Assembly: GCA_965153285.1 (NCBI GenBank)
Contig: OZ229112.1
From: Podarcis tiliguerta
Taxonomy: Eukaryota
DNA: 64,000 nt
Direction: 5' to 3' (one strand)
The position numbers and the translations under genes are program-made. The notes under the pieces are model-generated. The model was not told the DNA's origin. It made no database searches and saw only the letters and a list, made by a program, of their open reading frames with translations. Shown in pieces: positions 20,191 through 63,267 of the stretch. The first letter of the stretch is position 1; each line of letters opens with the position of its first letter.

Positions 20191-20859
20191 AATAAAAATA
20201 AGCCCATTACAACAGCACAACGAAAAAGTTTAAAACAACAGTTGGTTAATAATATAAATTTTAATCAGTCAAATCAGCATATGAATAAGAACAAGGGGAA
20301 CAAAAAGCTATCTCCCTTGGTTTTAATCAATGTACAATGACAATGAGTCAGAGCTGGTGGGGCAGCAGCTTTCCAGGATGTCAAGCAGAAATCTAGCAGG
20401 CAGTGTGAAATATCTCTGTCCAAGACCTTGGGAGCTGCTGACAGAGTAGACAACGCTGAACTAAATGGACAAATATTCTGAGCTGCAATAGGGCACCTTC
20501 CTATAATCGGATTAGAAGAGTCATCCCCCCCCTTTTTATCATTTTAAAATGATACTTTCCGTTTGCATATTTACAACAATTTAGTTTTCATTACGATTTT
20601 TATTATTTTACATCTGAGGACTGATTAATTGGGGGACAGCCTTTTTTGGTCAGCCAACTAAACATTGCAAGCCCCCTGCTTTTCCTCTGAAATCCGCCTA
20701 TATACAGATCAGTGATCAAATGACACGAGAGCCGGAGGAAGCCTGTGTTCTGAATCAGCTGAAATTCTCGCAGACCCCTGTTGAATACAGAACACATCAA
20801 AAGGAGAACGGGAAACTCGGGGTATAGTGCTCTACCGTTTTCTCTCTCTATGAATTCTG

Positions 20860-21480
20860 AGTTACCAGGCCGGACGGAGCCCACTGATATATTTTTGGCC
20901 CCCCAGCGGCCTCTAGCGTCTGGGAGGATGCCTTACATCCCCGGGCAGGCGCAAAGGCCACGTGACTCGAGTTCCGCCGCCGCCATTTTGTAAGGACGTC
21001 GGAAGGAAGCGTCTTCCCAGCCCGCCCACCCACCCCCGATTAAGCAGCGTTTGCGTCCGGTGCTACGTGCGCGCGCGAGGAGCGGGGGCAGTTGATGCGT
21101 GCGCAGAGCGGGGGCTGGGAAGGGAGCTGGCGAGAGCGGCCTTGGCGGCGGCGGAGGCGCTACTCTTGTCGTGATGCACCGCTCCAGCAGCAGCCGTTCG
21201 AGCAAGCCGTCTTCCAGCCGGTCCAAAACCAGCGCATCCAGCTCTAGTTCGGCTCGAGGCCGCAGCTCGCACCGCTCGCGGTCGCGCTCGCGCTCGCGCT
21301 CCCGGTCTCCGCGGAGCCGCCGCCGGCACCGCTCGCCCTCCAGCGGACGCTCTTCGCGCCGGTCGCCGCCTTCGCGCCGCAGTAGTCGGGTACGCTCTGC
21401 CCGTGGCGGCGGTGGCGGAGGCTGAGGGGGTTGCGGGTTGGGGAATTGGCCCGGCCTCAGCGAATTTAAGACGCCTCCGA
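20860..21480. promoter_or_regulatory. CpG-island promoter, probably bidirectional
   Basis: Very high GC and CpG density; E-box CACGTGAC (20959-20966), YY1 CGCCATTTT (20981-20989), ETS CGGAAG (21000-21005), NRF1-like TGCGTGCGCA (21096-21105); overlaps first exon of the ZNF318-like gene. Confidence 0.9.
21174..21389 (+). CDS. ZNF318: ZNF318-like exon 1 (Arg/Ser-rich)
   Basis: ATG CAC CGC TCC (MHRSS, cf. MYRSS); RSRSRSRSRSRSP; donor CGG|gtacgc, phase 0. Confidence 0.82.
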
Positions 21481-24400
21481 GAGCCAGTGTGGTGCAGTGG
21501 TTAAGAGCGGTAGACTCTAATCTGGTGAACTGGGTTCGCGTCTCCGCTCCTCCACATGCAGCTGCTGGGTGACCTTGGGCCAGTCACACTTCTTTGAAGC
21601 CTCTCAGCCCCACTCACCTCACAGAGTGTTTGTTGTGGGGGAGGAAGGGAAAGGAGAATATTAGCCGCTTTGAGACTCCTTCGGGTAGTGATAATCCAAC
21701 CCAAACTCCTCCTCTTCCGCCTCCCCAGCATCCAGGACTGCCTGCTCACCTCAGTACAGTGGTATCTCGGGTTACATACGCTTCAAGTTACATACGCTTC
21801 AGGTTACAGACTCCGCTAACCCAGAAACAGTGCTTCAGGTTAAGAACTTTGCTTCAGGATGAGAACAAAAATTGTGCTGCAGCGGGAGGCCCCATTAGCT
21901 AAAGTGATGCTTCATGTTAAGAACGGACCTTCAAAACAAATTAAGTATTTAACCCGAGGTACCACTGTACCTTCCCCAAGGAGCATCCCCCATCTCTCGC
22001 ACCTAACTGCCACTTACCGGAATAGCCAGCTGTTTTCCTGCCCCCAACTTAGTTTTATATAACATCATGGCCCACATTTCTGGGCGTGCGCCCAGCAATC
22101 TTGAGCATCCCTAAGCAATCTTACCCGTGATCCCAGCCTTTGCTCTGTGGTGATGCGAAGGAGGTCGAAAGGCTTAATGACAGCTGGAGGGGAAGCTTTG
22201 CCTCAAAGTAGAGAAACATGAAGTGTGCAACAGCCCTGTGTATCCTACATCTGAGAGGAAATCACCTTGGATTTAGTAAGACTTCTGAGTAGACCCGTCT
22301 CAGGTTGAGCTGCACGTTCCTTTCTTTCCTTCATTTCTACATGAAGGAAAGTGGCCGGTGATTTTTGCGCGCGCACACAATACCCTTAACAGGTTAAGGC
22401 AATACCTGTAGATTTGGTTTGTGGTGGGGAGGAGCTTAGGTTTATTTTTACCAAAGGTTCGTGGATCGTTGAATGAATTTGAAAAATAGGATGGCTGCTA
22501 AAGCATATTGGGCGCATAAACCTGGTTGGATTACAGTGGTGCCCTGCAAGACGAATGCCTCGCAAGACGGAAAACCCGCAAGACGAAAGGGTTTTCCGTT
22601 TGCAGAGGCGCTTCGCAAGACGAATTTCCCTATGGGCTTGCTTCGCAAGACGAAAATTGACGAAAATTCTTGCGATTTTTTTTCGCTCCAAAACCCCTTT
22701 TTGTGAAGCGCTAAGCTGCTAAAAGCATTTTAGCAGCAAAACCGCTAATCCCTTAAGCCTTAAAAAGCCGTTTTTAGCCCTTAAAATGTCAATAGCGCTA
22801 ATCCGCTAATGGGCTTGCTTTGCAAGACAAAAAAACCGCATGACGAAAAGACTCTCAGAACGGATTCTTTTCGTCTTGCGAGGCACCACTGTACTTGAAA
22901 ATTATTTCAACCAAAATCAACACAGCTAATGGATAGTCATGCTTAGGATCAAACTGTGAATTTCAGAGAAGATTAGCCTTTGGAAGTGATTGTCCTTCAC
23001 TTTTCATATTTGTCAATAACCAAATACTTAAAGATCTTAAAGGCTGGGGAAGAAGAAGAAAAGAGGCTGCATTTGCATGATCAGATCTTGGCCTAATGAG
23101 CTGAGATGTGCATAAATTTACTGAACTCCGCATGCAATCTCTTTGGTCCCCTGTCCCCTTTGTTCAAGTGGGAAACATGCCAGGAAACCATAGTTATTCT
23201 GTTAATTGGAAAGCTGGTCAATGGCTTCCAAGGAGGCTAGAAAATGAAGCCATTGAAATAAAATTTGCTTCCAGTTCCTGTCTTGTTTGGAAGCCAGTGT
23301 TTGGATGTAACAGTACACTGCTGTTAGTTTTGATGCCTGGCTTTAGGAACGGAGCTGAGCAAGCTGCATGTGGATTTGTGACTCTGCACATATCTTGGCT
23401 TAATAAACTGAGATTTGATTATCTAGATAGCAGGAGGAAGCAGAGTGAGGAGATAAAATGCTTCCAAGAGTTAAGTTCACCTATCTAAAAATGTCTATTA
23501 GAACTTGGAAGTGCCCTGTTCCACTGATGGACTATCTCCCTGTTCCATTACTAATTAATTTTAAGAAACAACCCATTCCTAGAATTGACCGCTTTTATGT
23601 GAAAAATGGGGGTGGACAGTGGTTTTTTGGTGGTCTATGTCACTAGCAATAAATTGGGAGGCTTCCTATTCTTCTAAATGGTACAATTGTCAATTTAGCT
23701 GCATTTTCTCATTACATTGTTGGTGTACATATTATCAGATGTCTTCGCTGCACATTATAAACATTAGGTGCATGTAGTGTTTTTCAAATCCACATCAATT
23801 GTAGTAAAATTTGCATACTGCATTAATATTGGCTTATTTCTTAAATAGCATCATGAACCCCCTGCCTCATAGTAACTTACGTGGCTATGAGAATTCTGAT
23901 GTTTTGTTATTTTAATTGTAGAGACGCTCTCCAGGCAAGCGCTCTCACTCTCCGGGCAAGCGCTCTCACTCTCCGGGCAAGCGTTCTCACTCTCCGGGCA
24001 AGCGATCTCACTCTCCGGGCAAGCGCTCTCACTCTCTGGACAAGCGCTCTCACTCTCCAGACAAACGCTCTCCAAGTTTGAGTGATGGGAACAGGTAAGG
24101 CTTCTCTGAATGCCAGTCTCTCATAATTAACCTTGGTTATCTTTCTTGGTACTTGTCGCATGGGTAATATAAAACACCACAACCTGATTGTAAGACGTTG
24201 TGGGAAATGTATAGGACATGTTGGGAATCTCATATAGGACAGACATATTTAACTCTCTTATTGACATATTTTTAATACCTCCCTTGGTATAGATTTAAAA
24301 TGTTAGGAATTAAAGAGCGGCATTGAAAACATGTCTCGGTTTAATTTCATACAGCCTTTTTATAAATAAGAGCAGGATGGAGATGGATAAAAAGTACATA

Positions 24401-27400
24401 GTTCAGTTTTGAAAACCTTTTGTTTGATTGAAATCATTAGTTTTTACATCTACTTCTTTGAATTTTTCTGACAGTTTTGTCTTCAGTGGATTCTGAGGAA
24501 GCCGTGAGAGTAGATGTGGAACTGAAACAGCTTCTTTTCTAAAAATGAACCCCAGTTGAAAAACAAAATGAAATTAGTAAATTTCTTGTCACCTCATGAC
24601 AATTTAGCTGCTATTTTAAACTCACATGTTCCTGCAGGTACAGAAACAGTGTGAAGATCTATATTATAATTTGCTTTCGCTGCCCAAACATCCTGTTTTC
24701 CTAATCCATTTTTAGGGGTGAAATTTCTTCTGCAGATCCCCAACAGCAGGTTTCTATTTAGAATAGGGTTATATACACAGACATGTACATGAAAAAGGGT
24801 ATATTTAGGAAAGATAATTGCATGAATGACAGAAGTTGTAAAACACTTTCACACTGAACAATGAAACTTCCCCGTTGCTTTTACTTCTAGAGCCACTTCT
24901 AGAAGTAGAAGCAACAGGGAAATTTCATTGTTCACTGTGAAAGTGTTAAAGCTATATCAACACTAGAATAAGGAAGACCCAAATTGGACCCACAAGAAAA
25001 TGTTGCCACATAGAGTGCTGCTGATCAGGGTTCTCTCAGTTATTCCATTCCATTCCTCTTTGCACCCCCACCAGTGTCCTGTGCTTTTGCCCCCAACACT
25101 TGCCCAATATTCCATGTTGACAGAGCTTACTCAGTTTTCCTTGGGCTGGTTATTTCTTTATGTCTCTCCTTAGAGTTTTTGAAAATATTTTTTGTGCATC
25201 TGCAAATCTTGGGTTTTCCCTGAACCAAAATATAGCCCGCTCTTAATGTTTGGGCGGTCATTTTGGCTACAGAAGGATTCATTATTAGTTTGCTGTTAGT
25301 ATGTAGAATATGGAAGTATAACAGCAGAGATCATTCAGTGTGTAATTTAAGGGTTAATTATGTTGTAGGTAAGCCATCTAGACAAGAGGGGGTAAGTTGC
25401 GACCAGGGAGGGTGGCATGATCTTCACTGGGATAGTAGCTGCTTTGGTAAGCTGTCTAGCTGTGAGTGAATTTTCTTGTGGGTGTTTCATTGAATCTAAG
25501 ATGCTGTCAACAAGGCCTGTCAAAAGGCAAAACTCTTTCTTTCTGCTGGGCAGGGCTGTCTTACCCATAGGCGCTAGGGTTGCGAGGCACCCAGGTGCCA
25601 GGCCCTCAGGGGCACCAGGCTGAGAGTCTGGGGCTCGAGAGTTGAGTCCGGGAAGAGCCCGACCGTCGGTCGGAGTGCTGCAATGAGCTCTTCTGGGAGC
25701 CAGAGAGCAAGCGAGCAAGTGGGTGGGCAAGCAGACAGACACGCGCCCAGCGAGAAGGAGGAGGACAAGAGGCGGCAGCAACAGCAGCGAGCAGAAAAGG
25801 CGGCAAGCGGCCTCCTCAGCACGCCTTTCCCGCCTCGGCTTTAGTGCCGTCCCTTCGCTCCTGACGGCAGCTCCCTGAGAGAGAGAAAGAGAGTGAGCGG
25901 CTTCGCCTCTTTTTGCCAACCAGGTGTCTGACAACTCTGGGGAACCTTTCCTTTAAAAAGGTCAGCAACTTTGGGGTTCCCCCCAAAAAAGGTTAACAAC
26001 TCTGGGCAACTTGGGGGGGCGCCGGGCGGATCTTTGCACCCCTGCGCCGCATATGCTTAAGACAGCCCTGTGCTGGAGTTTGGTTTGTTCAATAAACTTT
26101 GGCCAGTATTTTATTGCTGGGCACAGTGCTCAGTGTCTCTGCTAACAGGGTACTGTTAAAGTGATTTTAACTCTGTCGTGGTGATAGGAACAATGCAAAT
26201 TACCGTATTTTCCCCACTATAGGACGCACTGGACTATAGGACGCACCTTGTTTTAGAGGGGGGAGAACAAGGGGGAAAAATTCTCCCCCTCTCTGCCCAG
26301 TGTCCCTTCAGCGAAGCAGCAGGAGGTGCTGCACAGAGAGGGGGAGAATTTCCCCCGTCTTGTTTTCCCCCTCTAAAACAAGGTGCCTTCAGGCGGCTAC
26401 CTCGGAACCTCTCCAGGCTTCAGGTTCCTTTCGACCTGCTCTTTGGGGCTGGCGGGGGGAAGCCCACCACCAGCCCCAAAGAGCAGGTTGGGGAGCAGCG
26501 GAAAGGCGTGCAGCGAAGAGGCTGCTGCCATAGCCGCACGTCACCTCTCCAGCTGGGAGAGGGTCGCGGGGGGCTTCTTTAGCCCCATGCGCGCTGTCCT
26601 GGCTGGAGAGGTGGCGTGCAGCTAAAGAGGCTCCTGCCATAGCCGCCCATCACCTCTCCAGCCAGGAGAGGGTCGCGGGGCTATGGCTTCTTCGCTCCAT
26701 AGGACGCAGACACATTTCCCCTTCATTTTTGAAGGGGAAAAAATGTGTCCTATAGAGCGAAAAATACGGTATAACTTTTTTTCAACTGATAGCTTGATCC
26801 TATGAACCGCCCCCCGCCCCCCCTTTTTAAGGGCTTATAATAGCTTGAGCTGGTATAGGTCTGTGTCTTGATGGACAATTTTTTTCAGTTGAATCCAGTT
26901 TCCCATTATAGATCTTATTCTCCTGCAGTATTAGAAAATTAGATATATATGCTAGGTTCCCAAATGGTTCCTTAAACCAAGGTTGCTGTCGTCAAAATGG
27001 AATGCCTAGTTTCCATTTTGGGGCAAGACAGCTCCAGTCTTAGTTTTCAAATGATGGACTGTCCATGATTGATTCTGAGTTAAACTTCTGACTACCTTGA
27101 GCTAGGTTAAGAGCTTTGAGAACTGGAAGAAGACAAGTCACTTGATCCAGGGATAGTCCACATACATATACAGTGATGCCTCGCAAGACGAAAAGAATCC
27201 GTTCCGTGAGTCTTTTCGTCTTGCGGTTTTTTCGTCTTGCGAAGCAAGCCCATTGACGGAGTAGCACTATTAGCGCTATTGACATTTTAAGGGCTAAAAA
27301 CGGCTTTTTAAGGCTTAAGGGATTAGCAGTTTTGCTGCTAAAATGCTTTTAGCAGCTTAGCGATTCAGAAAAAGGGGTTTTGGAGCGAAAAAACACCCGA

Positions 27401-30400
27401 AAATTTTCGTCAATTTTCGTCTTGCGAAGCAAGCCCATAGGGAAATTCGTCTTGCGAAGCGCCTCTGCAAACGGAAAACCCTTTCGTCTTGCGGGTTTTC
27501 CATCTTGCGAGGCATTCGTCTTGCGGGGCACCACTGTATATTGACCTAAATTTACCTCTTTTTCTTAATGGTGACTGTTCCTGCTCAGGCTGCACAGAAA
27601 AAGCAATTTGGTTCCAGAAATTCATTCCGATTGTGCAGATAAAATGTAACTGATAAAATTTTACAGGGTATTAGTGGGATATTAGTGTGTGAAAACAGTC
27701 CAGATCCAATGATCCCCAGATGGTGATGTCGGGTGCCATCCTGGTGCCCAGGCATCTTCACTTGGTTGCAAGTGGTCAAAAGCCAGGGGCAAAATGCGCC
27801 TGGTGCCTGGCTAATTTTGAACACTGCTTTGAACTGATAAGGAAGTTGTCTTCCATATTTTGATATTTTGCTTCAAACTGTTTTTGACATGTTAGGTGCA
27901 TGAAGATCTCTTCACAATTATTGTTGGGAAAGCGTTCAGCAGGCTGAGTGTGATGAACACATGTATTTAGGTTCAATGCTTTCAGCAATCCTCATTTAAA
28001 AACATGCATGGAAGTTATTTTCAGTAGTAATTCTGAGGGGGTTTTTTGTTTTGTTTTTTTGCTAAAGTAACATGCAGAAAACAGTATGTGAAGGAAATTA
28101 TTTGAGGAGTGGAGGGTGAGAAACTTTGCTGAATTTTGAACTACAATATTGTTGCTGAAGAAAGGGGGAATTCTACTACTGTAAAACATACCAAAATGTT
28201 CTGTTGCTTACTTTCCCCCTAGATAGCCAGCAAGACATTTGTGTTCTTTTTTTTTTTATGAGACCATGTAAAAAAGCTAAACACAACCCTAAATGTGTGT
28301 TGTTCAAATCCACCATAAAATAATTGAAGTATGCAGGCCTTTTGTGTAAGATAAATAGACAAACTGGAACCTGAGTGCTCTCAAGTTTGGGCTTCTGTTC
28401 CTTCTGTTCCTGTTGCATGTCTCCTATGCTCATAAATAACAAGACTTCTCAAATGAATTATTTCGCTCACTGCAGCATAGTTTGGACTGTCATGGGGTGA
28501 AGTTATTGCTGAGTATATAAAATCTTCAGAACCAGCCATCTTGGGTTCAAGGCAAGAAGTATTGAGTTGTCATACAAAGGGCACTTTATGCCAGCTGGAG
28601 TTCAGGGGGGGTTATTCCAAGTTGCTGATTTTGTTCTGTACCTCTCTTATTAGGGATGACTTGGCTGATGGTCCAATATTTAGCAGTGGCCTTCCACGCC
28701 CTCAAAGCATTGAGCGGTATTCCTTGAGCAAGGAAACTCCTCCTTCACCTTTCAATACAGGACAAGATGAGGATTATCGCTTTAGAGACGATTTCCTCCA
28801 TCAATCAGACTATAGCACCAGCTATAACCATCTACAATATCTCCCAAAGGAAACGGAAAGGTATAGAATGCTACTTGGGAAGCCATCAGAGGATACAGGG
28901 CAAGACCTAGAACTTCCTAAACATGACAGAGATGACAGACTGCTTAAGATAGACATAGAGCCTGAGGATTTCTTGTCTGGGACGTGGAGCTTCTGCAAAC
29001 AAGATCCTAGTAAGAGCCCAAGCCTGCCATTTCACGATGTGGATTTACGTGTACTTGAATATCCTGGGGGGAAAAGCAAAGAGGAGGAGCTGAGCAGAAA
29101 TTGCAGTCAAGACCCTGAACATAAATATATTTATAGACCTAATGAAATAACAGCAATGCCCAAAAAATCTATTCTGAAGAAACACAGGGATGATCCTTCG
29201 GTGCAGGTTTGGCATGTATTTCTCTCTCTGGTTAAACTGTCCTTTACACTTTTTACTGCTCTTTTATTGAATCTTAAATTTTATTATTAAACTTAATCTC
29301 TGTTAATTCTGGAACAAATACCCTCAGAATAATATCCAGGCTTCCCTCACAGTTGTGGAGTTTGTTTGGTATAACTTGTAGAATAATCAGCATACTGGAT
29401 CCCATTTTTCTTGGAATGAGGACATTTTACTAGTTTTGGTATTTAGAGCATCCCACTTCATGAGCAATTCTACCTTTCAAAAGTTTTCATTCAGCTTATT
29501 CATATAGCTTTAAAATTCACACACAATCAAAATCCTTACTTATTAAAAAAAACCCTAAGCTTTCCAGAAACAGATTTCCAGGCAGTATACATAGGAATTT
29601 AAATATAGGCGATTCCCTGTTAGTGTGGGGGTTGCTTTCCAGGTCATTGTACATGTTAGCAATTGTGCGTAAGCCCATTTTGCTCCCTTCCAAAGCTGAA
29701 AGCAGCGCATGTCTTGGTGGTCACATGTCAGGTAGACAGGTGCAAGGTGATCGCCACCTGTACTACAATCTAAAACAACCGAGAATACAATAAAGTTGAG
29801 AATGGCAGAACTATTCAGCTAGATAATATAACAATTTGCAGTGGCTGGGTTACAGAAACATTTTTACCTGGTTCGAGCACCAGATTCACTATCCTTGGCA
29901 GTGCATTCTGTAGCTGTGATGCTATCACACAGAAGAGCCTCCCACTTGTATATGTGTAATGTTTTTCTCCTATAGATAGAACCTGCGGCAAGGTGCCAGA
30001 AATGTTTTAACACCTTGACATCTGAAGGCAGCCCTGTATAGGAAAGCTTTTTAAGGTTTAATTTTTTACTATGTTTCTATATATATGCTGGAAGATGCCC
30101 AGAGTGGCTGAGATACAAATAATAAATTATTATTGTTATTGTTGTTATTATTAATCTGGACATGATGGGGTTTTTTACCTCTACAGCAGAAAAATCAGAA
30201 TAGTCAAGACCACCAAATTAAGGTGGTTTTTGGAATGGTACATCTGGGATTTGTTTTGAACCATTTAATGGCACTTGCAATGGGTTGAATGCAAACAAAA
30301 TAAGGGTACTATTATTCACATCTGTGTGTAGGCTGAAATTGAAGGGTTGGCAATTTATGCAGTACATTTACCATGTTGTGCATTTTTTTAACCTGCTTGA

Positions 30401-33400
30401 ACCTAATACAAGAATCTTAATACTAGAATTACCTAGTTGGATTGGACTGCAAACATTCTCTCAAACTGGTATGGAATGCTCTGAACAGGTGACATTTCAT
30501 ACTATCATGACTGGATTGTTTTTCTGTTGTGTAGCTGTGGAGAGAGAGCACCTTGGCAGGTGGTTCCAATACTAAATACTGTAAATAAATAATGTTTTTC
30601 AAAACCGTGCCAACTATGATGTGGCAAGTACCTTTTTGGCATCCTGCTCTCTCTATCTCAGGGTTTCATCATATGAAAAAATCAGTTCGTTTCTGATAAT
30701 AGTAACAATATGCCCGTGGGAATTATCTTTTTGTAGCTGCACATAATGCTTGCTTGTGAATGTTTTGGTGCAAAAAACACTTTGGGTTTGGTGCAAAAAA
30801 CACTTTGGGTTTGGTGAAAAATGTTGATTTCAAATCTCCAAAGGTATTGTTTTACATATGTTTGTCCCTGTCCACAGCCACTGTGCTGCTCCTCAGTTAC
30901 TCATTTGACATGGTTTTTCTTCTCCTCTTTTATTGCTGTGTAATCTCAGCAAATCAGGCATTGCAGAATGATTCTCAGGGTACTGCATATCCCCTCAGCT
31001 TTGTCTAAATGACAGTGTTATTCAGGGCAAACAAAGCCCTCTCATTGCCCTCACTGTGAATGAGGGTAGCTTGAGTAGGGGCAAGAATTGCACAGCTATT
31101 ACCAAGGTATCAAGCTGACAAATCTTACCTCGCTGTACTGGCAGTTTTATAGCTCATTAGATCAGTGTTGCAAGCCAGGGTTGGCCTTTAGTGGGGGATA
31201 ATTGGTCACTTTCTCTTCCAGTGCCCTATTAAAGACGATCAGGCAGGAGTGTTGATTGTCGGCAGTGAAAGTGACATGACAAAAGTGTATAAAATTATGC
31301 ACAGCATGGAGAAAGGAGCTAGAGAAAAGTTTTCTCTTTCTCATAATACTAGAACTTATGGACATCCAAGGAAGCTGAATGTTGGAAGATTCAAGACAGA
31401 CAAAAGGAAGTACTTCTTCACACTGCACGTAGTTTAACTGTGGAATTCCTGCCCACAAGAGGCAGTAATAGCCGCTAACTTGGGTGGCTTTAAAAGAGGA
31501 TTGGCAAATTCACAGAGGTTATGGCTATCAGTGGCTGCTAACCCTGATGGATATGCTCTGCCTTCACTGTTGTGTTGAAGGTGGTATGCTTCAGAATACC
31601 AGTTGCTGGAAACTGCAGGTGGGCAGAGGGCTGTTGCTCTCAGCTCTTGCTTGTGGGCTTCCCTTGGGCTTCTAGTTGGCCACTATGAGAACAGGATTCT
31701 GGGCTAGGTGGGCCACTGGTTGGATCCAGCAGACTGTTCTCACATTCTTAAAGTATGGCCCATCCCTAATCAAAATGGCCATCTTATGCAGATGTAACAG
31801 TGTGGTATTTAGGAACTATTTTGTCTCTTTCAATTCCATTTCTATCTTTGTCTTACAGTTTTCGTTAGTGTTATGAACTACTGACTATAAACCCTTTATA
31901 TTAAAGTTATGTCTGTCTTAATAGATTGGGAAAGTGATTAGCCTCCTTGCAAAATGTAGTAACAAATGGCAATTTCTTTCTTTTTAGCCTGAAGTCTTTT
32001 CTAGCAGTTCTGCCTCTCTCAAAGAGCCCCCTCTTCTTTCAGATGATCCTCCTTTTCCCCAGAGAACCAACAGCATTGCTCCTTTTTCAACTGAGGAGGT
32101 GAAATTCCTCAAACAGTTCAATAAAAATGCAGATGTAGAACCTGCAAATACAACATCTGAAGACAATGTGCATAATTGGAAGCTGCATTCTGGCCAAAAA
32201 CAAAACATTTCCCATTATAAACAGAATTTTGGGAGCTTTTTGAATCAGAGAGAGTGTCATGAGTCCACATCAGAGCATGAAGACCAGCACAGTTACTTCT
32301 TGCTTCCCCATGAAAGAGCCAGCCAGGAAGGGAATGGCTTTTCACACATTCTGAGTATGAAAACAGATTCTACCAGCACTCAAGAAAAGAGAAGGAACAG
32401 CCTACTTGATGATGTTGAGGCTGAAGAGAAGTTTCTTTATGGTGATAATGGGGATGACTCAATTTTTATTCAAAGGATAACATTGAGTGGTGATAAAGAA
32501 CATGGATGGAAGAAAATAAGCTCTCCTCCTGCTAGTCTATCTGTAAAATCAGACACTTTAGAAGAATCCAAACCAGAGCATGAGAAAATTTATGACTTGC
32601 TCAAAACTATTGGTCTTGACATTGGGGTGGCTGAAATTGGTAAGCTTGCTGCCCGCACTCAGGAACGCCTCCATGGGAAGAAAGCATCTCGTTCTCCTGA
32701 TCGTCGTTCAGTGGCTTCTCATAAACCTAGGAAAGACTCTAGGGAGTCTAAGGAAAGGCACCGCAGTCAAAGTGACACTCATTCTCCAGAGCCAAGGTGG
32801 AACCACTCTCCCTCTCCTGATTATTTCCCACCATCTAAAGAGATGTCTCCTGCTTCACATTCTAAGCACACTGAAAGCAAAACGGCACGGCAAGATTATC
32901 ATTTCCCACAAGAGCAAGCTGTTGCCATAGCATCTCCAATTCCATCTGCCCCACCTTGTCTTCCTCAAATGTTTCCTGCTCCCATGTATCCCCAGTATAG
33001 TGTTCCATTCTATTTACCATTTGGTGCAACTCCCCTGCCACAAAACTATCCACCTCCTACAATGCCTCCTCCTGGCTATAATCCATATGGACAGTATTTC
33101 ACTTATGCAGCTTCAGGCTGGGCCACGTATCCTCCCCAGCAGGCTCCTCCCCAGCAGGCTGATCCTGAATTTCCAAATGCACCTGAGTATGGTACTCCAA
33201 CAATGCCACCAAATCATTCAGTTTCCAACGTCAGAGTTATTCAGACAATTTCCACAACACGAAGGACTTGTGATATCAAAAGAAAGACATCTATGATTGT
33301 TCAAACCCCTTTCTCTGCTCCTAATTCCAAATTGCTCCCTCAGCCTACCCACAAAGGCGCTAAGGAAAAAATACCTGATGATAGAAATCGAGCTGCTCAG

Positions 33401-35273
33401 AAACAAAAGGTGAGAATGTTTATCTTACAAGCAGATGTATCTTCCTCCTCCCCCCTTCTACCACATTTCCTTTTCCACATAGTAGCAATGTAGCTGCTGC
33501 TATTGAGAAGTGGATAGTATCCTTATAGACTTACTTCTGAATGCCTTATACTGTAGTTTAAAAATATATACAGTGGTACCTCGGGTTACAGACACTTCAG
33601 GTTACAGACTCCGCTAACCCAGAAATAATACCTCGGGTTAAGAACTTTGCTTCAGGATGAGAACAGAAATTGTGTGGCAGCGGGAGGCCCCATTAGCTAA
33701 AGTGGTACCTCAGGTTAAGAGCAGTTTCAGGTTAAGAACGGACCTCCGGAACGAATTAAGTTCTTAACCCAAGGTACCACTGTAATACTTTTTCTACTGC
33801 ACATATTTTCCTAACACATAATGAAATATGAAACCAAGTGCAGAATTGATTCCTTATTTAAGATTACATTCTTGGATTTAAGGTCTGCCGTTTTACAGAA
33901 GTTCAAAGCACATACAATTTTATTTTAACTTTTTTCTGCACTTTTTATTTGACATTGGATTACGTATAGTTTTTTTGAACAGGATGTACCTCTAATGTCT
34001 TGAGCTATCTAATGGCTGTTTTTATGGTACTGTGGCAAGACACACCTTGTTAATTGTTGTTGTTGTTTATTACCTGCCCTTCACCCTAAGGTCTTAAACA
34101 GTCTCTCTTTAAGGATACAATCTACATGCAGTTCCTGCTATTGGAACACTTGGTAACTGAAATCTCGGCCAAACACGAAGAATTATACCCAAACCTCACT
34201 ACACAAGCAGCAAATTCAGATACCCAAGCAGATGGAGTTTGCCTACTTCATGTTTTGCTGGTCAGCAGCAGCCCTTTTGGGAAGAAACCAGGGAGGGAGG
34301 GGGAGAGATCAAACAAATTACGAAATAGAAGTGTTCCCATAGGAAATAATGGAAATCATAAGCTCATTATGTGAACATACGCCTAACAAATGATTTCCTG
34401 GGAACGCATTTTGTTCAGAAAGCAGGACCTGCATGCTTTTAAGCTTTAGTAAGTTTTAGTATGTTTCATGTTTAGTGGCATTTAATATGTTAGGAGCTGG
34501 GTGCAATGAATCACAGGCTGAGTTAGCAAGCATAAGATGAAAATATTTACTTTCAATGATTGTTGTAGTTTTAGTTGGGTTGTAATCCATGAAAGGGGGA
34601 TTTTTAATACCTTCCTTCCCTTCACAAACCTTTCTAGGTATTGGAGGAAAGAGGGAAATTGAAGGCTGAACAAGAAACACGACAGAAGAAACTGCATTAT
34701 CTGACAGTTGAGTTAAACAGACTTACAAAACAGGAAGGTACTGCACTCATTTTATTCTTCCTTTTCCCCTACTATCCTCTAAAGTGGTGATGCTGGACAT
34801 TGCATAATTTGTTTTTATCTCAGGGTATTATCCTAAACAGGGAATTAATTAGGGTGCAACCCAAATCATTGCAAGTAACGTGTCAGTTCTTCATACAGTA
34901 ATGCAAACCCTGCTTCTGTCTTTTGGGTATACCAAAATGGTACCTTATAATTGATTACCCAAAATAATTTTGCATGTATTAATGATTTTCTTATGCTTTC
35001 CACTCTACCACTTTGACTGGCTTAGGGGAGATGATGCGCAAGATGCGTAAGGCAAAAGATCCCTTGCTGGTGGAAGTGAACCAACTACGAGAGAAGATAG
35101 CAAAGGAAGTTGCTCAGCTGCAGATGCATTCTGATGCGGCAGAGAAAAAGCAATCTGAGCTTGATAAGGTAGCTCTGATCTTGGGGATTAACATTTTTGA
35201 GAAACCCCGGAAGCAGTCTTCTGAAAATAAAGACTCATCAGAAAAAGACAAGTCAGAAAATGGAAAAAAATGA
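21174..35273 (+). CDS. ZNF318: ZNF318-like protein, C-terminally truncated (903 aa, no zinc fingers); exons 21174-21389, 23922-24094, 28654-29206, 31988-33409, 34638-34737, 35026-35273
   Basis: Six exons splice in frame (216+173+553+1422+100+248 = 2712 nt). ZNF318 hallmark motifs: MPKKSILKK, FLLPHERASQ, EEKFLYGD, DLLKTIGLDIGVAEIGKLAARTQERLHGKK, NRAAQKQK, KDPLLVEV, AEKKQSELDKVALILGINIF. TGA at 35271-35273. Ortholog versus paralog status is inferred, not shown. Confidence 0.88.
21479..21695 (+). mobile_element. tRNA-derived SINE (Squam3-like)
   Basis: gagagccagtgtggtgcagtggttaagagcggtagactctaatctgg...gggttcg...gggtgaccttgggccagtcac. Confidence 0.8.
21757..21967. mobile_element. Tc1/mariner (Tigger-like) MITE
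   Basis: TA|CAGTGGTATCTCGGGTTA ... TAACCCGAGGTACCACTG|TA; sister copy at 33571-33782. Confidence 0.85.
22534..22891. mobile_element. Tc1/mariner MITE (CGTCTTGCG family)
   Basis: TA|CAGTGGTGCCCTGCAAGACG ... CGTCTTGCGAGGCACCACTG|TA. Confidence 0.88.
23922..24094 (+). CDS. ZNF318: ZNF318-like exon 2, largely a 21-bp tandem repeat encoding KRSHSPG
   Basis: ttgtag|AGACGCTCTCCAGGC (RRSPG, as at start of ZNF318 exon 2)...AACAG|gtaagg; phase 0 to 2 bridges exons 1 and 3. Confidence 0.82.
24842..24947. repeat. Inverted repeat (50-bp arms, 6-nt loop)
   Basis: 24842-24891 is the reverse complement of 24898-24947 at 46 of 50 positions. Confidence 0.92.
25551..26070. mobile_element. hAT-like MITE
   Basis: 13-bp TIR CAGGGCTGTCTTA/TAAGACAGCCCTG; imperfect flanking duplication tgctgg; GC-rich interior. 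Confidence 0.75.
26203..26769. mobile_element. Tc1/mariner (Tc2/pogo-like) MITE
   Basis: TA|CCGTATTTT ... AAAAATACGG|TA, subterminal tataggacgca; related copy at 48100-48473. Confidence 0.82.
27171..27536. mobile_element. Tc1/mariner MITE (CGTCTTGCG family), inverted relative to 22534-22891
   Basis: TA|CAGTGATGCCTCGCAAGACG ... CGTCTTGCGGGGCACCACTG|TA. Confidence 0.88.
28654..29206 (+). CDS. ZNF318: ZNF318-like exon 3
   Basis: tattag|GGATGACTTG (RDDLADGPIF)...MPKKSILKK...GTGCAG|gtttgg. Confidence 0.9.
31265..31750 (+). mobile_element. CR1 LINE 3' fragment
   Basis: DMTKVYKIMHSMEK...KLNVGRFKTDKRKYFFT, CR1 ORF2 C-terminus, followed by 3' UTR similar to 2720-2960. Confidence 0.8.
31988..33409 (+). 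CDS. ZNF318: ZNF318-like exon 4
   Basis: ttttag|CCTGAAGTC...CAAAAG|gtgaga; 474 codons without stop. Confidence 0.92.
33571..33782. mobile_element. Tc1/mariner (Tigger-like) MITE
   Basis: TA|CAGTGGTACCTCGGGTTA ... TAACCCAAGGTACCACTG|TA. Confidence 0.87.
34128..34430. mobile_element. Old DNA-transposon-like repeat; inverted related copy at 38615-39014
   Basis: Shared blocks ctattggaacacttg, gttcccataggaa.taatggaaatca, aaagcaggacctg in opposite orientation. Confidence 0.6.
34638..34737 (+). CDS. ZNF318: ZNF318-like exon 5 (coiled coil)
   Basis: ttctag|GTATTGGAG...GGAAG|gtactg; VLEERGKLKAEQETRQKKLHYLTVELNRLTKQE. Confidence 0.9.
35026..35273 (+). CDS. ZNF318: ZNF318-like exon 6 (coiled coil, ends in TGA)
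   Basis: gcttag|GGGAGATG; GEMMRKMRKAKDPLLVEV...ENGKK*. Confidence 0.88.
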
Positions 35274-35416
35274 GGAGATAACTTGCAACTCAATCCAGGT
35301 AAAATAACAGGTGCACTCACCAAGGGAGTTCAGATAATAATTACTTAATTAGTCTGGATATAAATTAGCCTTTTGCCCATGCATGTATCCCCTTCGCTTC
35401 TCCCTTTGTACAAGCC

Positions 35417-35422
35417 AATAAA
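35417..35422 (+). terminator. Candidate polyadenylation signal for the truncated ZNF318-like transcript
   Basis: AATAAA about 145 nt after the stop codon, with TGTA immediately upstream (35407-35410). Confidence 0.45.
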
Positions 35423-37297
35423 CAAACCAGGAAGTTTTCAATTAACTTCCTATTTTATGAGTCCTATGTTGTGAATTACTGTTTTATGTCTAAAGGAAAG
35501 TAAAATAGTTGTTAAGAAGTTTTGTCTCTTGGGTCTTTGGTTTAAATTAAATGCTGATACAATATAGCAACCCTACCAAATTCACGGAAATAGAAGGTAA
35601 GATATCTCTAAATTTTCTAAGCCGCTCAAGGTTTATCCTAAATCATTATCTACAGTTCCCCCACACCCTCCTTCACAGCTCTGTTGTCAGACTGCAATGA
35701 TGGGAGAAACTTTTTTCACTCCCAGCACTGGGCTGTCAAAACTCAGAAGCCTTTCAGAGGTAGGAGACTTTCACATGTAAAAGGTAGCAGCAGAGAGTTC
35801 TCTCCCTCGTACCACCCCTTTTTATAAATAGCTTTTACTGTTGTAGCAAATCAATAGTGGCGTTTTGTTTTGTTTTGTTTTGTTCATTAAATTTGCATAT
35901 TGCCCTAAATCTATAAACTTGACTAGGGGATAGGAGAGAAATTTGATCAGTTCTCATTGAATGCTGAATCTATCAAATTCTCACTTTCCAAAACAATATG
36001 AAAACTGAAACACAGCCATCCTTTAAATTTCACCCATACCCAAATTTTGCAATGCAGTTCTCCATCCAAACAACCAAATGCATATATTTAAAAAATGCCT
36101 CTGTTGGGGGAAGTGCATAAAAATTAAGATATTAGTAAAAATAGCGTACACGTGATATTAGAGGAAATTGCAAAAATGTGTCCATTAGTCAGAACTGCAT
36201 ACAAAAATCTCTTAATTAGAAGAAATGCACACTAAAGTGCTGATGTATTATTATTATTATTATTATTATTATAATAGCAAATCTTTGTAGAAACTGCATT
36301 TCAGATTAGAAAAATGGGAACAGAGAGAACCAAAATTGATAGATCCTTCCATCCCAACTCTTCTCTCTAGGGCTATATCACCTTATATGCATCTCAGAAA
36401 GGATGTTATGTTATGATGTAGCATCCTTCAGTAAACATTGTGAGGAGAAAACATGGCTCCGTACTCCACCCTTCCCTCCAGTGCACTTAGAAGGATTATA
36501 AGTTGTAACTTAAAGGTAGGGTGCTATAGCCCCATAGAGGATTCAGAGTACCAGCACTGCTTTGCTTTGCTCTGGCTTTGCTATAGCAGCAAATACTTTA
36601 AATAGAAAAAACCCTCTGCTGTAAACCTTTATCCAATTATGTCCCCACCACTGAAAGATCTCAGAAAGACTTGTCAACCCAGATGTAATTCTGTCACCTC
36701 CTTTCCCATTTCCTCTTTGACCTCTTCAGTGCTTAAGGCTCATATTAATTCTACTAAATTGGACTTTTACTCAAATTAGCAATGTATATGTGCGCACACA
36801 TTTTCTCTCTTTTTCTGTGTGCATGGGGGGGGGGCTGATTCAGGGGACTAGGAGAGAAGTGACCAGCAGGATTATGGGTAGGATGGAAACTATCATAACA
36901 GTTTCAAGTACAATAGTTACTATAATATAAATGGTAATGATATAAAATTGTACATAGCAGTACTAGAACATTTAGACCATTCTTATATATCAATAAAGAA
37001 GTTGGGAGGGGGATTCTTTAAAAGAAAAACATTGAAACTCCATTGGTTTGTGTTTCAGTTGCCCTTTGGATATTCAAGAACTGACTAATAACAAACTGAT
37101 CATTTAACATTAACAGAATGCAAAAGACAGATTAAGAGAAGTCTTATTGCAAAGCCCAGTTTTACAAGTGTTATGAGAACCAAGTGACAGTGAGACATCA
37201 TTCACATTGTTACGAGGAATTTGCATCATAGGAGACAAAAGCAATAAAATGTGACTGTTGCAGCCATTCCAAGTATTCAAACAATTGTTAATTATGA

Positions 37298-37667
37298 GTG
37301 GCGCTGTGGTCTAAACCACTGATCCTTTTGGGCTTGCTGATCGGAAGGTCAGCGGTTTGAATCCGCCTGACAGGATGAGCTCCCATTGCTCTGTCCCAGC
37401 TTCTGCCAACATAGCAGTTTGAAAGCACACCAGTACTAGTAGATAAATAGGTACTGCTGCGACGGGAAGGTAAATAGTGGTTCCATGCGCTCTGGCTTCC
37501 ATCATGGTGTTCTGTTGCGCCAGAAGTAGTTTAATCATGCTGGCCACATGACCTGGAAAGCTGTCTGTGAGCAAATGCCGACTCCCTCGGCTTGAAGTGA
37601 GATGAGCGCTGCAACCCCATAGTCACCTTTGACTGGACTGAACTATCCAGGGGTCCTTTACCTTACC
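37298..37667 (+). mobile_element. Older, diverged Sauria SINE
   Basis: gtggcgctgtggtctaaacc...agtagataaatagg...gggaaggtaaa...cctttaccttacc; colinear with 19833-20190. Confidence 0.85.
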
Positions 37668-40600
37668 ATTCTCATTAGCGTGTTTGGGGCTGTAGTCCTA
37701 TTGTGCTGTTAGTAAAAATAAACATTCTAGAAGCTTTTTATGGCTAAGTATCGGGGTAAAAATGCTTAAAATATAAACAAGCATCATAAATATACCAACA
37801 AAAAGGACTGGATTTTGCAATCAGCAAATATGTATTATATCAACATGTATGGTACAGAAAGCCTTTTATAATCATTTCAGCTGTTAATGATTCTGCCATT
37901 GTGCATTCTAGGACTCTAAATGTAAATTAGAAATACACGTATAGATTACTCAGATTGCTACATTATATAATCAGAAAGATACAATTGTAAAATGATCTAT
38001 TTTAACACTTGCTTAGCCAACAACTGAAATTTTCTAAAACAAATTATTGTGCATAGTGATTTTTGCAATCCTAAAAATTATGTATAGATTTGAGTTTTTT
38101 AAAAGATTCATTTTATAGAGGATTTTGTGTACAATCTGGTTTTTCTGCTGATCTGTAACAACATGGCCACGGAAAAATCCATATCTTGACAGTGAGTTAC
38201 TCTTATAGGCATCTGTTTCCCACTTTATCTACATAATTAAGACTTTAACACATGGTTTCCTGTGCATACAATGTGTAACTATTTGAAACGTGCCAATTGG
38301 ATACTGTCAATGTCCACCAAGGAAACTGGCTTCTTCTGGCAACAGGTGTACTGCTGCCAGGCTCAGCATGCCTAGAGGAGCAGCTCAGAAGACAAGAGAG
38401 CAGGCAACTGGAACAGCTGAGGAACAAGCTTTTAAAAATCCATTTAGCTTCTGCTTCTACTTACCTGCCAGGTCAATGGAAGCAGTGGAGAGTAGATCTA
38501 TAGTAAAAAAATGTTTGGAGATTAGCTATAGCTGAGAAAATAACCTATACTGAAAGGAAAGTAAAAAACAGATGCCTTTTATGCCATCTGATGGCCATGC
38601 ATTTCATATACACGCAGGTCCTGCTTTCCCAGTGCAATGCCTTCCTCTGAACAAGAAAATAATTTGTTAGGTCAGCATTCACATGACAAAGCTGGTGATT
38701 TCCATTACTTCCTATGGGAACATTTTTAATTTGTGATTTGTCCAATCTCAATCCCTCCCTGGTTTATGCCTGAAACTGCCACAGCCAATCAGCAAAACCA
38801 AACAAAAGAAAAGCTGATTTGTTCAATCTCTCTTGCTCCCTGATTTGTCTGATCTCTCTCCGTCCCTCCATGGTTTCTGCTCAAAATGGCTGCTGGCAAC
38901 AAGCAGAGCATGAACAAGTAAGGAAGTGGGCAAGCTCCAGCTGTTCAGATATCTTAATCAGCAGTTTGGGCATAACTGAAATTTTTGATAACAAGTGTTC
39001 CAATAGTGGGACCTGTGTGTATTAGTGAAAGGGGTCTACAAAATATGTTATCTGCTTCATCATTACAAATCTAGATGTTGTGACCATGTATACTTCTTGA
39101 TAGTTGGATACTTCAGTTGGAGAAGATGACCTCATTGCGGACAGATGCTGCCCTGCAACCCTGGAAGAATAACATCAGAGAATCCCGCAGAAAAATGAAG
39201 AGGGACAAATAGTATAGGGACATGAATACTTACCAGATATCTGGAGAGACTTCGGGGAGGGGTGTTATGATTATGTTTATTTGTCTAGTTATATTTTGTT
39301 ATATGTATATGAAAACCAATAAAAAGTACTTATAGAAAAAGCAGTGGAGAAAGAGGCATTTGATACAGTAGAATGGAGATTTTTCTTTTATGAACTGAAA
39401 GTATTTGGTTTTATACTCCAATTCTTAACTTGGATTTGCTGAAAGATGAGGAAGTGTGACCCTGTTGATTATATTGATGTGCTTCCAGAGGCAAGGCTTT
39501 TTGTGAACAAGGACATTGTTTTTCCTTTTGAGACTGTGGAACTAAAAGTTACCATCCATACCATGTCAAACTTTTGTGTTCATTTTATTTGATCACTCTG
39601 TTTCCAGTCTATACCAGTGAGTGGATCATGCCAAGATGTGTTTGGAACAAAACAATTCACACTTTGCACCACATCCATCATATCTATCACTTTCCTTTTC
39701 CACTCATGTGTTTCCTGACCATGAATGCATGTATTTCATAGAACTGCATGTGCTTATAAAAAATATTAAAAATTGGAATGCTGGTATTTCAGAACTTTGA
39801 CATTCTGATTGGCCACAGTCAGTTCTCCTTTTCCGACTGTACTTCATTTCTAATCACAATAATTTGTGTGATTGAAAAACAGCCTATGTCTTCTGTACAA
39901 TGACACATGCACACAATGTAACTGGCAAATACCTCCTTTTACTAAAAGTTGGAACATTTATTATGGTCATTCATTATAAAGTGCTAACAGAATTGCTGGA
40001 AACCTTAAATTGCAATTTTTCAAAAAATAAATAATAGAGCTGCAGAAATTTGTCCATATACACTGTGCAAAGGTCTTTAGTAAAGAGATCTCTGCAACAT
40101 TATAAAAGTAGTAACATGCCTGGCAGTAATGGAAAGAAACAAAATTGCATGGATAGTGTGATCAGGTGAGAGCAGAAGAGAAGAGCTGTGATTAAAGGAT
40201 AGCTTTCTGGAATTGTCATTTACCCAAATCAAAACCATAGCCAAATAATTGTAAAGGGTAAAAGAGCAAAGAGGCGTCCATACATAAAGTTATGGATGAA
40301 AGGAAGAAACATCGTGGGATGTTTGCAAAAGGATGACAAGATGGTGTGGATGCCATGAAAAAACCACAGGAAACAGAGGAAAACATTGCACAATGTCTTG
40401 TCTCAAAACACCATTGATGTTTCAGGGGCTTTCAACCATGGCAGCCTTCTGGTTAGGCCCTCTTGAGTTGGAACTGACTCCAGATGGTGGTGTTAGGCAA
40501 TGATTGCTTGACCCCTTGCCAAATGTGCTTTGGGCTCCTGCAGCATTCTCTCATTTCTCCCATGCCATTATACGTTTAGATAAAAGTACTGGGAAAGGGT

Positions 40601-40989
40601 TTTGTAATTACAGAGTGAAACAGTTTAATAATTAGAGTGTGTAAATGGAAACTGCAGAGTTTACCAATGATTCTAGCAAGTATATGTAGAACAGATAGAA
40701 GACCGAAACATATGGTGTGCCTGGTAATTGAGATGTAACCCATGGATGTGAAACTTGTAGCCTTCCAGATGACGTTAGCCTTGCCATCAGCCCCAGCCAC
40801 CATGGGCAATGATTAGAGATTATGAAAGTTGTAGTTCAACATCATCTGGAGGGCTAAATGTTCAGTTTGGGGGGTAGCAGTTGTGCATGGGTTCCTAGGT
40901 GTTTGAAGGTATAGGAGACGGAATGGATTGGAGAAATGTGATTGAGAGAAGAGAGCTACTAGCAATTCAAAGAAGGAGTTCAGGTTCTA

Positions 40990-41550
40990 ATGTTTTTTTG
41001 AGAGTCCATACTCAAATAAGTAAGAGAGGTCAGTGCCCATATTCTCAAACAACCAAAAGAAGGGCTTCTATTTTCTGGCGATCTAGGATGAAGGCACTTC
41101 TAAAGGTGATTATGTTGAACCCCAAGATTGCTCCTCTCTCCATTTTTGCTGCGGATGCCCAGGACCTTACTCAAATGGATCTTCTTATCTGCCTTATCGT
41201 GGCAGCACAGCTTACCATTGCTAGACACTGGAGAACTTCAAATGCTGACCTGTTTGAAGTGTGGTTTATGCAAGCTTGGGACTTAATTTTAATAGAAAAG
41301 GCAACAGCAACGTCAAGACCTGAGGAACAATGCTAAATGAAATATACAACATGGTTTTGGTTTTTTTGTATGCTTTGATGACAGAACATGACTACAGACC
41401 ACCTACAGCTCATGAAGATTTATGGAAGGACACTTTTATTTGACGGGAAATATTTACATGATACTGAATTACTTTGAAATGAGACTGTGCTCTGGTGAGG
41501 GTGTGGGTCTTTATATCTTTTCTTACGTTGCTCAAACAGAAAAGAAACAA
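40990..41550 (+). mobile_element. L1-like LINE 3' fragment
   Basis: ORF 40899..41336 contains LIVAAQLTIARHWR...WFMQAWDLILIEK, resembling the C-terminus of squamate L1 ORF2. Confidence 0.6.
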
Positions 41551-46394: not shown

Positions 46395-47030
46395 AACCCT
46401 GCTGTGCTTCTATCCACATATCTATTCAATGGAGATGCCTTTCTCACTGTCCCCAGGCAAGCATTAGACAGGCATTCCTGGTTGATTGATGTGCAAAAGC
46501 CCCACCCCAAATTCTGCCTCTTCCCCACAGCTCCCTTTTGCCCCATGCTTGGCTCCACCCACTTAAACCTTCTCACCTGCCTGCTGTTGCTTTCTGCAAG
46601 AACTCTAGCATTCTTATGAGAGGCGCTTGTCTACATTATGCAAGAGAAACTCCCTTCGCTCCCAGCATCATCAAGAATTGAGACTGTGACTGTTAGTGCA
46701 AAACTAATGCCCTATGGCACTGCCCACCCCTTTTCCTATTTTTGCTACTTGTGATATTGTTGTTTTCTTCTTCTGACCCTCCTGTATTCTTTTTGTAGGT
46801 GTGACACAGGCTGGGAAGAGGAATACTGCAAACAATGTGTGGATGCCAGACTGTAGCCATGGGACTTGCTGCTAACCCTGGCAATTCAGTTGCCGAAGTG
46901 GCTGGCCAAGCAGGTTCTATGTCCAAGGTAGGCCACGCCACTTGGGACAGGGTGGGGACATCTTGAATAAAGTCAGGACAGGGAAAGGACACAGTGTTAA
47001 ATGCTCAGCTGCCTTATACTGCCCACATGG
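46395..47030 (+). pseudogene. Degenerate duplicate of DLK2 exon 10554-10684 (pseudo-exon 46799-46927) with flanking intron sequence
   Basis: Aligns by eye to ~9930-10810 (e.g. ttctcactgtccccaggcaa.cattagacaggc; ggctgggaag.ggaatactg; ccacttgg.acagggtggggac). Pseudo-exon has a 2-bp deletion and a CAA>TAA change; AG/GT sites retained. Confidence 0.9.

Positions 47031-47240: not shown

Positions 47241-63267
<16,027 letters not shown>

Follow-up and report, generated by a model that had tools for sequence, protein, structure and literature searches.

Can a gene that encodes the N-terminal half of ZNF318 and none of its zinc fingers be a gene in its own right, or is it a fragment of a larger one? 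This question is raised by a locus of six exons and 903 codons on the plus strand of a 64,000-nucleotide stretch of Podarcis tiliguerta DNA (NCBI GenBank assembly GCA_965153285.1, contig OZ229112.1), which was analysed over its whole length and is referred to in the following as the window. ZNF318 is required in mice for IgD expression as well as for spermatogenesis and male fertility, and the underlying mechanism is poorly understood. An initial annotation had described the locus as a new, truncated paralog of ZNF318. The comparison with other squamates, the gene structure and the transcript data presented here make it very probable that we are dealing with the lacertid ortholog of a short ZNF318 paralog present throughout the squamates, which derives from an old duplication and is intact and transcribed.

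An exhaustive phmmer search with exon 4 of the gene retrieved both short and long relatives. Proteins of about 700-1100 aa, named 'zinc finger protein 318-like' in RefSeq, are found in more than 20 lizards and snakes. Among the lizards that hold the short gene are Podarcis muralis, Rhineura, Sceloporus, Phrynosoma, Pogona, two Anolis species, Varanus, Elgaria and several geckos, and the snakes are represented by Python, Candoia, vipers, elapids and colubrids. In these same species, a ZNF318 of 2200-3000 aa with zinc fingers is present as well. It had been proposed that other squamate assemblies be searched for a second, full-length ZNF318, and such genes do exist: in Podarcis muralis, for example, the pair consists of P0121 (short, 904 aa, isoform X1) and P0207 (long, 2662 aa). 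P0121 is 91-97% identical to the exons of the window (exon 2, 91% over residues 80-135; exon 3, 94%; exon 4, 93%), its N-terminus has nearly the same residues as exon 1, and it ends where the gene of the window ends, with the same ...SENGKK stop. In a tree of exon 4, the copy of the window is sister to the short copy of Podarcis, followed by the short copy of Rhineura, with a support of 100 each. Exon 4 also matches the long ZNF318-like protein of Anolis sagrei (phmmer, E = 1e-126), which has the two zinc fingers and, across 1260 residues, shows 60% identity to turtle ZNF318. The short protein of Anolis carolinensis, however, is only 45% identical to this long protein of its congener, and the short and long forms are therefore paralogs and not isoforms. 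Wherever contig sizes are recorded, the members of a short/long pair lie on contigs of equal recorded size, and the long and short genes of Phrynosoma have adjacent locus tags; the two genes of the relatives most likely reside on one chromosome.

The two-gene state also bears on the possibility that the locus is an assembly artefact, in which one ZNF318 was split or misjoined and the finger exons ended up on another piece. The coding sequence indeed stops abruptly after exon 6, beside a run of seven adenines (A7); however, the same two genes are present in more than 20 species, exon 4 is only 57% identical to the long Podarcis gene P0207, and the same stop is found in Podarcis muralis. Furthermore, a contig of DNA from the same species (run X1) is identical to the window and unbroken from 34326 to 36000, thereby spanning exon 6, the stop and 700 nt beyond. 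An artefact is thus extremely improbable, and the view that the locus is a separate truncated paralog rather than a split or misassembled ZNF318 holds, as the relatives possess both the short gene and the full-length gene with fingers. It counts against this view that any full-length ZNF318 of P. tiliguerta would lie outside the window, so that the two-gene state is read in relatives.

The locus is, however, not a new gene as the initial annotation had it: it is squamate-wide, its gene models are already in RefSeq, and it is new neither in evolution nor in the databases. The short paralog is probably well over 100 million years old. Literature searches found no paper on ZNF318 in squamates or reptiles, nor on 'zinc finger protein 318-like'. 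For tuatara, turtles, birds, the skinks Tiliqua and Lerista and the cordylid Hemicordylus, the database matches comprised long forms only, and no dedicated search for the short gene was made in them; either Scincoidea may have lost the short gene, or the annotation may merely omit it. Two further observations concern the database proteins themselves. In the snake Erythrolamprus reginae, the long gene is accompanied by three or more additional partial copies of recent origin (P0142, P0010 and P0145), which group with the long copy in the tree of exon 4. The proteins P0003 (Elgaria), P0010 and P0011 (Eublepharis) share an unrelated, mutually similar tail (...DGVHLS..GNDIFL...) and look like chimeric models that include other, possibly repeat-derived sequence.

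How complete is the gene in the window? The exons were verified singly, and all searches were performed with single exons or database proteins, never with the joined six-exon protein. Exon 1 (21174-21389; 216 nt, 72 codons) begins with an ATG, encodes an arginine/serine (RS)-rich N-terminus and stays open up to a GT donor. It is overlapped by a CpG island (20751-21750), the presumed promoter, with a GC content of 0.61-0.71 and a CpG observed/expected ratio of 0.92-1.11 in segments of 500 nt. Exon 2 (23922-24094; 173 nt), which is flanked by AG and GT, free of stops and ends in phase 2, contains a 21-nt coding repeat that encodes KRSHSPG heptads. Exon 3 (28654-29206; 553 nt) encodes DDLADGPIF...MPKKSILKK, has AG and GT borders and fits in phase. 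The largest exon, exon 4 (31988-33409; 1422 nt), provides 474 open codons and carries all N-terminal blocks of ZNF318/TZF (FLLPHERASQ..GFS, EEKFLYG and LLKTIGLDIGVAEIGKLAARTQERLHGKK; among them the LLKTIGLDIG...RLHGKK block) together with a Pro-rich stretch. Exon 5 (34638-34737; 100 nt, AG and GT borders) encodes the first part of a helical or coiled-coil region, which continues in the coding part of exon 6 (35026-35273; 248 nt). The latter includes the motif KMRKAKDPLL, the A7 run at 35264-35270 and the TGA stop codon at 35271-35273. The 3' untranslated region (35274-35440) contains a retained GT donor after 35298 and an AATAAA signal at 35417-35422. All internal borders of the six exons are of the AG...GT type, the phases 0, 2, 0, 0 and 1 are compatible, and there is no internal stop; the exon lengths add up to 2712 nt, that is, 903 codons and the TGA, and the window has no run of N. 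On this exon-by-exon check, the canonical splice model of the initial annotation, its coordinates and its 2712-nt open frame proved to be right, the CpG island it had placed upstream is real by GC content and CpG ratio, and the retained elements it had named were all recovered, namely an RS-rich N-terminus, the block LLKTIGLDIG...RLHGKK, a Pro-rich stretch and, in exons 5 and 6, a helix-forming region.

The region encoded by exons 5 and 6 aligns throughout with the coiled-coil helix that follows the Pro-rich region in the family (KDPLLVEV...AAEKKQSELDKVAQILGI). When exon 6 was folded alone, residues 12-52 were modelled as a single helix with a pLDDT (predicted local distance difference test) value of 90-96 over most of its length; the segment is thus a predicted helix or coiled coil. 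The initial annotation had further suggested that the core of exon 2 was replaced. This is not the case, as long squamate copies bear the same kind of heptads in other copy numbers, for instance about 12 copies of SPGRRSR in the long copy of Rhineura; the repeat is therefore older than the duplication and variable in length. What the short copy does lack is the conserved segment NLRITVGNDRYG, which comes after the heptads in the long copies.

The two matrin/U1-type C2H2 fingers of ZNF318 (YYD.GNHWCKDC... and YYCQLC...) were found in the window neither by tblastn nor by a pattern scan. The tblastn searches used the full-length ZNF318 proteins of Anolis sagrei, Pelodiscus, Rhinatrema, Podarcis and Rhineura; all five were compared with the complete 64-kb window and matched exons 2 to 6, and nothing credible was obtained past residue ~930-1000 of the queries, where the best E value was about 1 or worse. 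This includes the long Pro-rich C-terminal exon of about 1100 aa or more, for which there was no tblastn match in the window. A scan of all six reading frames of the window with the C2H2 pattern gave no hit on the plus strand, and the search for relics of ZNF318 exons 7 to 10 across the whole window returned matches at chance level only. Since nothing matches past the coiled coil and the plus strand has no C2H2 pattern, the window genuinely contains neither the finger exons nor the long last exon; their absence, which had been noted up to ABCC10, extends over the entire 64 kb. A scan with a local copy of Pfam, from which the database's own tag PF27978 was missing, identified no family in the short proteins and a sub-threshold zf-C2H2_jaz match in the long Anolis protein.

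Evidence for expression comes from four sequencing runs, which were compared with the window over 31900-37800. Run X1 is DNA of the same species and nearly identical to the window, and X5 is DNA of a relative (organism B); X15 and X17 are RNA-like and derive from two further relatives, which are about 3% diverged. The spliced joints 33409>34638 and 34737>35026, both with GT..AG borders, are present in X15 and X17 only and not in the DNA runs. In contigs of X15 and X17, the match to the genome begins at 31986, no more than 2 nt from the acceptor of exon 4 at 31988, after 583 or 653 letters from elsewhere, which fits exons 3 and 2. The depth of the X15 and X17 contigs amounts to 50-120 in exons vs approximately 5 in introns. 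The gene is correctly spliced and transcribed. With regard to the five splice junctions for which transcripts had been suggested as a check, the joints between exons 4 and 5 and between exons 5 and 6 are seen in two relatives, the junction between exons 3 and 4 is represented by the acceptor edge of exon 4 only.

The end of the reading frame deserves separate consideration. Most short copies end at or just past the old border of exon 6 (...NSIK), and in the lacertids a frame change places the stop directly after the A7 run, so that the frame ends nine codons short of the old border. The A7 run is covered free of gaps in contigs from the species of the window and from two relatives, and the same stop is present in Podarcis muralis; the stop is therefore real and common to lacertids, and a homopolymer error at this position, which was considered as well, is ruled out by the same observations. 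Behind the stop, the donor CAG|GTAAAA at 35298/35299 has been retained. A contig of X17 ends exactly at 35298, where it overlaps the next contig by the usual 30 nt and the depth falls from 120 to 37; in X15, the depth near 35280 drops from 83 to 17. Splicing from the donor at 35298 to a downstream non-coding exon therefore seems to persist in most transcripts; an acceptor or downstream partner of this donor was not found among the joints listed. As the stop lies 25 nt upstream of the donor, the coding sequence is unaffected by splicing there, and according to the 50-55 nt rule a junction this close to the stop would not trigger nonsense-mediated decay.

Did the short genes of the squamates arise once? 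In an alignment of exons 5 and 6, the motif KDGHKDPLL is unchanged in every long copy from coelacanth to mammals, and one residue upstream of it varies in tuatara only. A deletion of four residues in this motif (RREKDGHKDPLL) is common to every short copy outside the geckos, including the copy of the window, in which the motif reads KMRKAKDPLL; the departure from the canonical motif that had been pointed out is thus confirmed. The shared deletion and the shared end at the old exon-6 border therefore argue for one old duplication. In the tree of exons 5 and 6, iguanian, anguimorph and snake short copies fall into a single clade (support 80/87), which follows the species tree, and a single origin of all short copies is compatible with this tree. 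The tree of exon 4 has a different topology, in which the short copies of geckos, lacertoids, iguanians and snakes stand beside the long copies of their own lineage. This grouping, together with the rejection of a single clade of short copies in exon 4 (see below), suggests gene conversion. A tree-independent count of diagnostic residues, defined as residues that are fixed in and unique to the long copies of one lineage, points in the same direction: lacertoid-specific residues occupy 10 of 19 cells in the short copies of lacertoids, whereas they make up 0-3% of the cells in geckos, iguanians and anguimorphs and 22% of those in snakes, and the same tendency is seen for the own-lineage residues of geckos (33%) and anguimorphs (30%). 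The simplest reading of these sequence comparisons is one old duplication, which would date at least to before the non-gecko squamates split, followed by gene conversion, in which exon 4 would have exchanged sequence with the neighbouring full-length gene.

Alternatively, the gene might have been duplicated recurrently and independently in geckos, lacertoids, iguanians/anguimorphs and snakes. The pairing of short copies with long copies of their own lineage in the exon-4 tree would fit such a history, and one clade of all 28 short copies is rejected for exon 4 by the approximately unbiased (AU) test (p = 0.002), for which the group was chosen with the tree already in view. Also in favour of this history are the additional copies of the long gene in Erythrolamprus, which are clearly recent, and the lack of the 4-residue deletion in the short copies of geckos. 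However, recurrent duplication would have to account for an identical 4-residue deletion in all other short copies and for a breakpoint at one old exon border in most of them, which is unlikely to have been hit four times, as well as for the single clade of iguanian, anguimorph and snake short copies in exons 5 and 6 with its species-tree order. We therefore regard such independent origins as quite improbable. Several points nevertheless weigh against a single duplication with later conversion: besides the choice of the tested group and the intact motif of the geckos, whose short copies may stem from a separate duplication, snakes show zero conversion signal and the counts of diagnostic residues are small.

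If the short gene is as old as a single duplication would imply, its sequence should be considered with regard to constraint. The mean column conservation of exon 4 is 0.52 in 28 short copies vs 0.81 in 24 long copies. Three blocks, namely DFLLPHERASQDGSGFS, EDEEKFLYGD and 37 residues around LLKTIGLDIG...RLHGKK, are 70-99% conserved among the 28 short copies and invariant in the long copies, and the helix of exons 5 and 6 has been kept among the short copies as well; the rest of the short protein appears to evolve fast. Between the window and organism B (X5), 34 changes were counted codon by codon in 31988-33203, which correspond to 24.5 nonsynonymous and 9.5 synonymous changes. The resulting ratio of nonsynonymous to synonymous substitution rates (dN/dS) of 0.71 is by these counts not distinguishable from 1, and the values of 0.78 for X15 and 0.50 for X17 are rough, as they were obtained from incomplete lists of differences. 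Furthermore, exon 4 differs by approximately 2.9% from organism B, compared with about 1.3-1.5% in the flanking non-coding DNA (33757-36011 and 36283-37322). Over this short range the constraint appears looser, and both the ratio and this excess weigh against the main interpretation. The faster divergence of exon 4 could result from relaxed constraint, from adaptive or otherwise fast protein change, or from conversion tracts derived from the long paralog. Several of the differences in exon 4 fall close together (32884/86/88 and 33186/90/91), and 12 nt are deleted at 33131.

These values raise the question of whether the locus is a transcribed but decaying duplicate, that is, a unitary pseudogene in the making without protein function. 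A dN/dS of about 0.5-0.8 among close lacertids, the divergence of exon 4 beyond that of its flanks, the low column conservation of the short copies and the loss of the last nine codons by a frame change in lacertids would all be in line with decay. On the other hand, a frame of about 900 codons has stayed open in lineages that split long ago, the three motif blocks have been preserved in the 28 short copies, splicing is correct and the depth of the exons exceeds that of the introns several-fold. As for marks of a pseudogene, the frame is open, the splice sites are intact and spliced contigs occur in two species; the only such mark found is the frame change nine codons before the old end. Decay without function is accordingly considered very unlikely, and an intact, transcribed paralog remains the preferred interpretation. 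The selection on the open frame that had been postulated is supported in so far as the frame and the motif blocks are kept across squamates; its strength was overstated, as the dN/dS of exon 4 is about 0.7.

The neighbourhood of the gene offers clues to the event that created it. Upstream, the last exons of DLK2 (10594-10869 and 11851-12498, plus strand) have open frames with epidermal growth factor (EGF) repeats, a hydrophobic segment resembling a membrane span and a tail, and look intact. Downstream, a decayed relic of a DLK2 exon was detected at 46837-46989 (plus strand) when the DLK2 exon of the window itself served as tblastn query (E = 1.7e-12, with 54% identity across 52 residues). The proposal that a co-duplicated piece of DLK2 has decayed thus applies to this downstream relic and not to the upstream DLK2. 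The 3' part of ABCC10 (51053-63267) has open frames with ABC-transporter motifs and is read from the minus strand; it and the short ZNF318 gene converge tail to tail, an arrangement that refines the earlier placement of ABCC10. The names DLK2 and ABCC10 are based on motifs read by eye and on the labels of the initial annotation. When eight ABCC10 exon frames of the window were used as queries, no relic of ABCC10 was found between DLK2 and exon 1 (12.5-21.2 kb). Several repeats are interspersed in this neighbourhood. The AT-rich spacer between the short ZNF318 gene and the DLK2 relic contains an open frame of 145 codons (40899-41336, plus strand), which, judged by eye, looks like a C-terminal piece of a retroelement open reading frame (ORF). 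The segments 33476-33869 and 37219-37800, in introns and downstream, are very high-copy interspersed repeats with a summed contig depth of hundreds of thousands to millions. The ORF fragments at 21594-21902 and 22473-22706 are like those repeats, and similar translations (...LQDENKNCAAAGGPIS) recur across the window.

The order in the window is DLK2, short ZNF318, DLK2 relic and ABCC10, and the human order in the same orientation is DLK2(+), ABCC10(-) and ZNF318(+). The order of the window fits the remnant expected from a tandem duplication of a DLK2-ABCC10-ZNF318 block followed by reciprocal loss. In such a scenario, one copy of the block would have kept DLK2 and the first six exons of ZNF318, and the DLK2 relic, ABCC10 and the full-length ZNF318 would be what remains of the other copy. 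Together with the sequence past the old intron 6, the two matrin/U1-type fingers and the long Pro-rich C-terminal exon would have disappeared, thereby leaving the short gene in its present form.

What could a protein of this kind do? In mouse, Zfp318 gives rise by splicing to proteins of 902 and 2025 aa, which act on the androgen receptor in opposite ways by repressing or enhancing its activity (PMC11520953). The fingers of ZNF318 are of the RNA-binding matrin type and ZNF318 has been linked to the HUSH complex (bioRxiv 10.1101/2022.04.07.487460); the part of the same preprint that cites Tao et al. 2006 states that ZNF318 homodimerises and binds the androgen receptor via its N-terminal part. 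The short product has neither the RNA-binding fingers nor the C-terminal domain, which would make RNA binding impossible, and would use the protein-interaction modules that are common to ZNF318, with the same partners. The short gene might then be the gene-encoded counterpart of a short isoform, which modulates or competes with full-length ZNF318. It is tempting to speculate that the shared interaction modules serve this purpose, and we put this forward as a tentative possibility. A complex prediction with the coiled-coil segments of P0207 (822-945) and P0121 (781-904) gave a score of 0.14 with a mark of 0.34 and counts neither way. The short protein could also act independently of ZNF318, for instance as an SR-like factor or as a nuclear-receptor co-regulator of its own. 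The divergence of its coiled-coil segment, which includes the deletion as well as changes from RTEL to RIEL/TVEL and from IMKEI to IAKEV, would agree with an independent role; however, the best-kept parts of the short protein are the blocks that are also invariant in full-length ZNF318, which fits shared partners, and an independent function, although less likely than not, is nearly as probable as the role of a modulator. A more far-reaching idea, for which the chances are slim, is that squamates split the pair of short and long ZNF318 isoforms into two genes, that gene conversion in exon 4 keeps the two in register, and that the short protein opposes or cooperates with ZNF318 in androgen-receptor signalling, in the development of germ cells or in the processing of IgM/IgD transcripts.

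The short gene can be compared with three known forms. With canonical ZNF318 or TZF-L (2000-3000 aa), it has in common the RS-rich N-terminus, the three motif blocks, the Pro-rich stretch and the coiled-coil helix, whereas it lacks the matrin/U1-type fingers, the long C-terminal domain and the NLRITVGNDRYG segment. Canonical ZNF318 is found in the same neighbourhood of ABCC10 and DLK2, but the short gene lies on the 3' side of ABCC10 and not on its 5' side. The mammalian short TZF (mouse, 902-924 aa) is similar to the short gene in length and extent, as it also comprises the N-terminal half through the coiled coil; however, it is an isoform of a single gene and has one C-terminal C2H2 finger, whereas the squamate form is a separate, fingerless locus with its own presumed promoter. 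The 'ZNF318-like' entries of RefSeq, P. muralis P0121 among them, have the same six-exon extent, the same missing fingers and C-terminal exon and the same 4-residue deletion; they are automatic gene models, and outside the lacertids their frame continues to the old end of exon 6. To these entries, the present analysis adds the evidence for one old origin, the layout of the DLK2 relic, the signs of conversion, the transcript support and a map of the conserved motifs. The locus is a tidy case of block duplication, reciprocal loss and probable gene conversion and represents no new kind of system. The surviving motif blocks mark constrained N-terminal parts, which are likely needed for function even without the fingers. 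Taken together, squamates provide a natural separation of the N-terminal half of ZNF318 from the RNA-binding fingers and the C-terminal domain, which has long been kept as a gene of its own.

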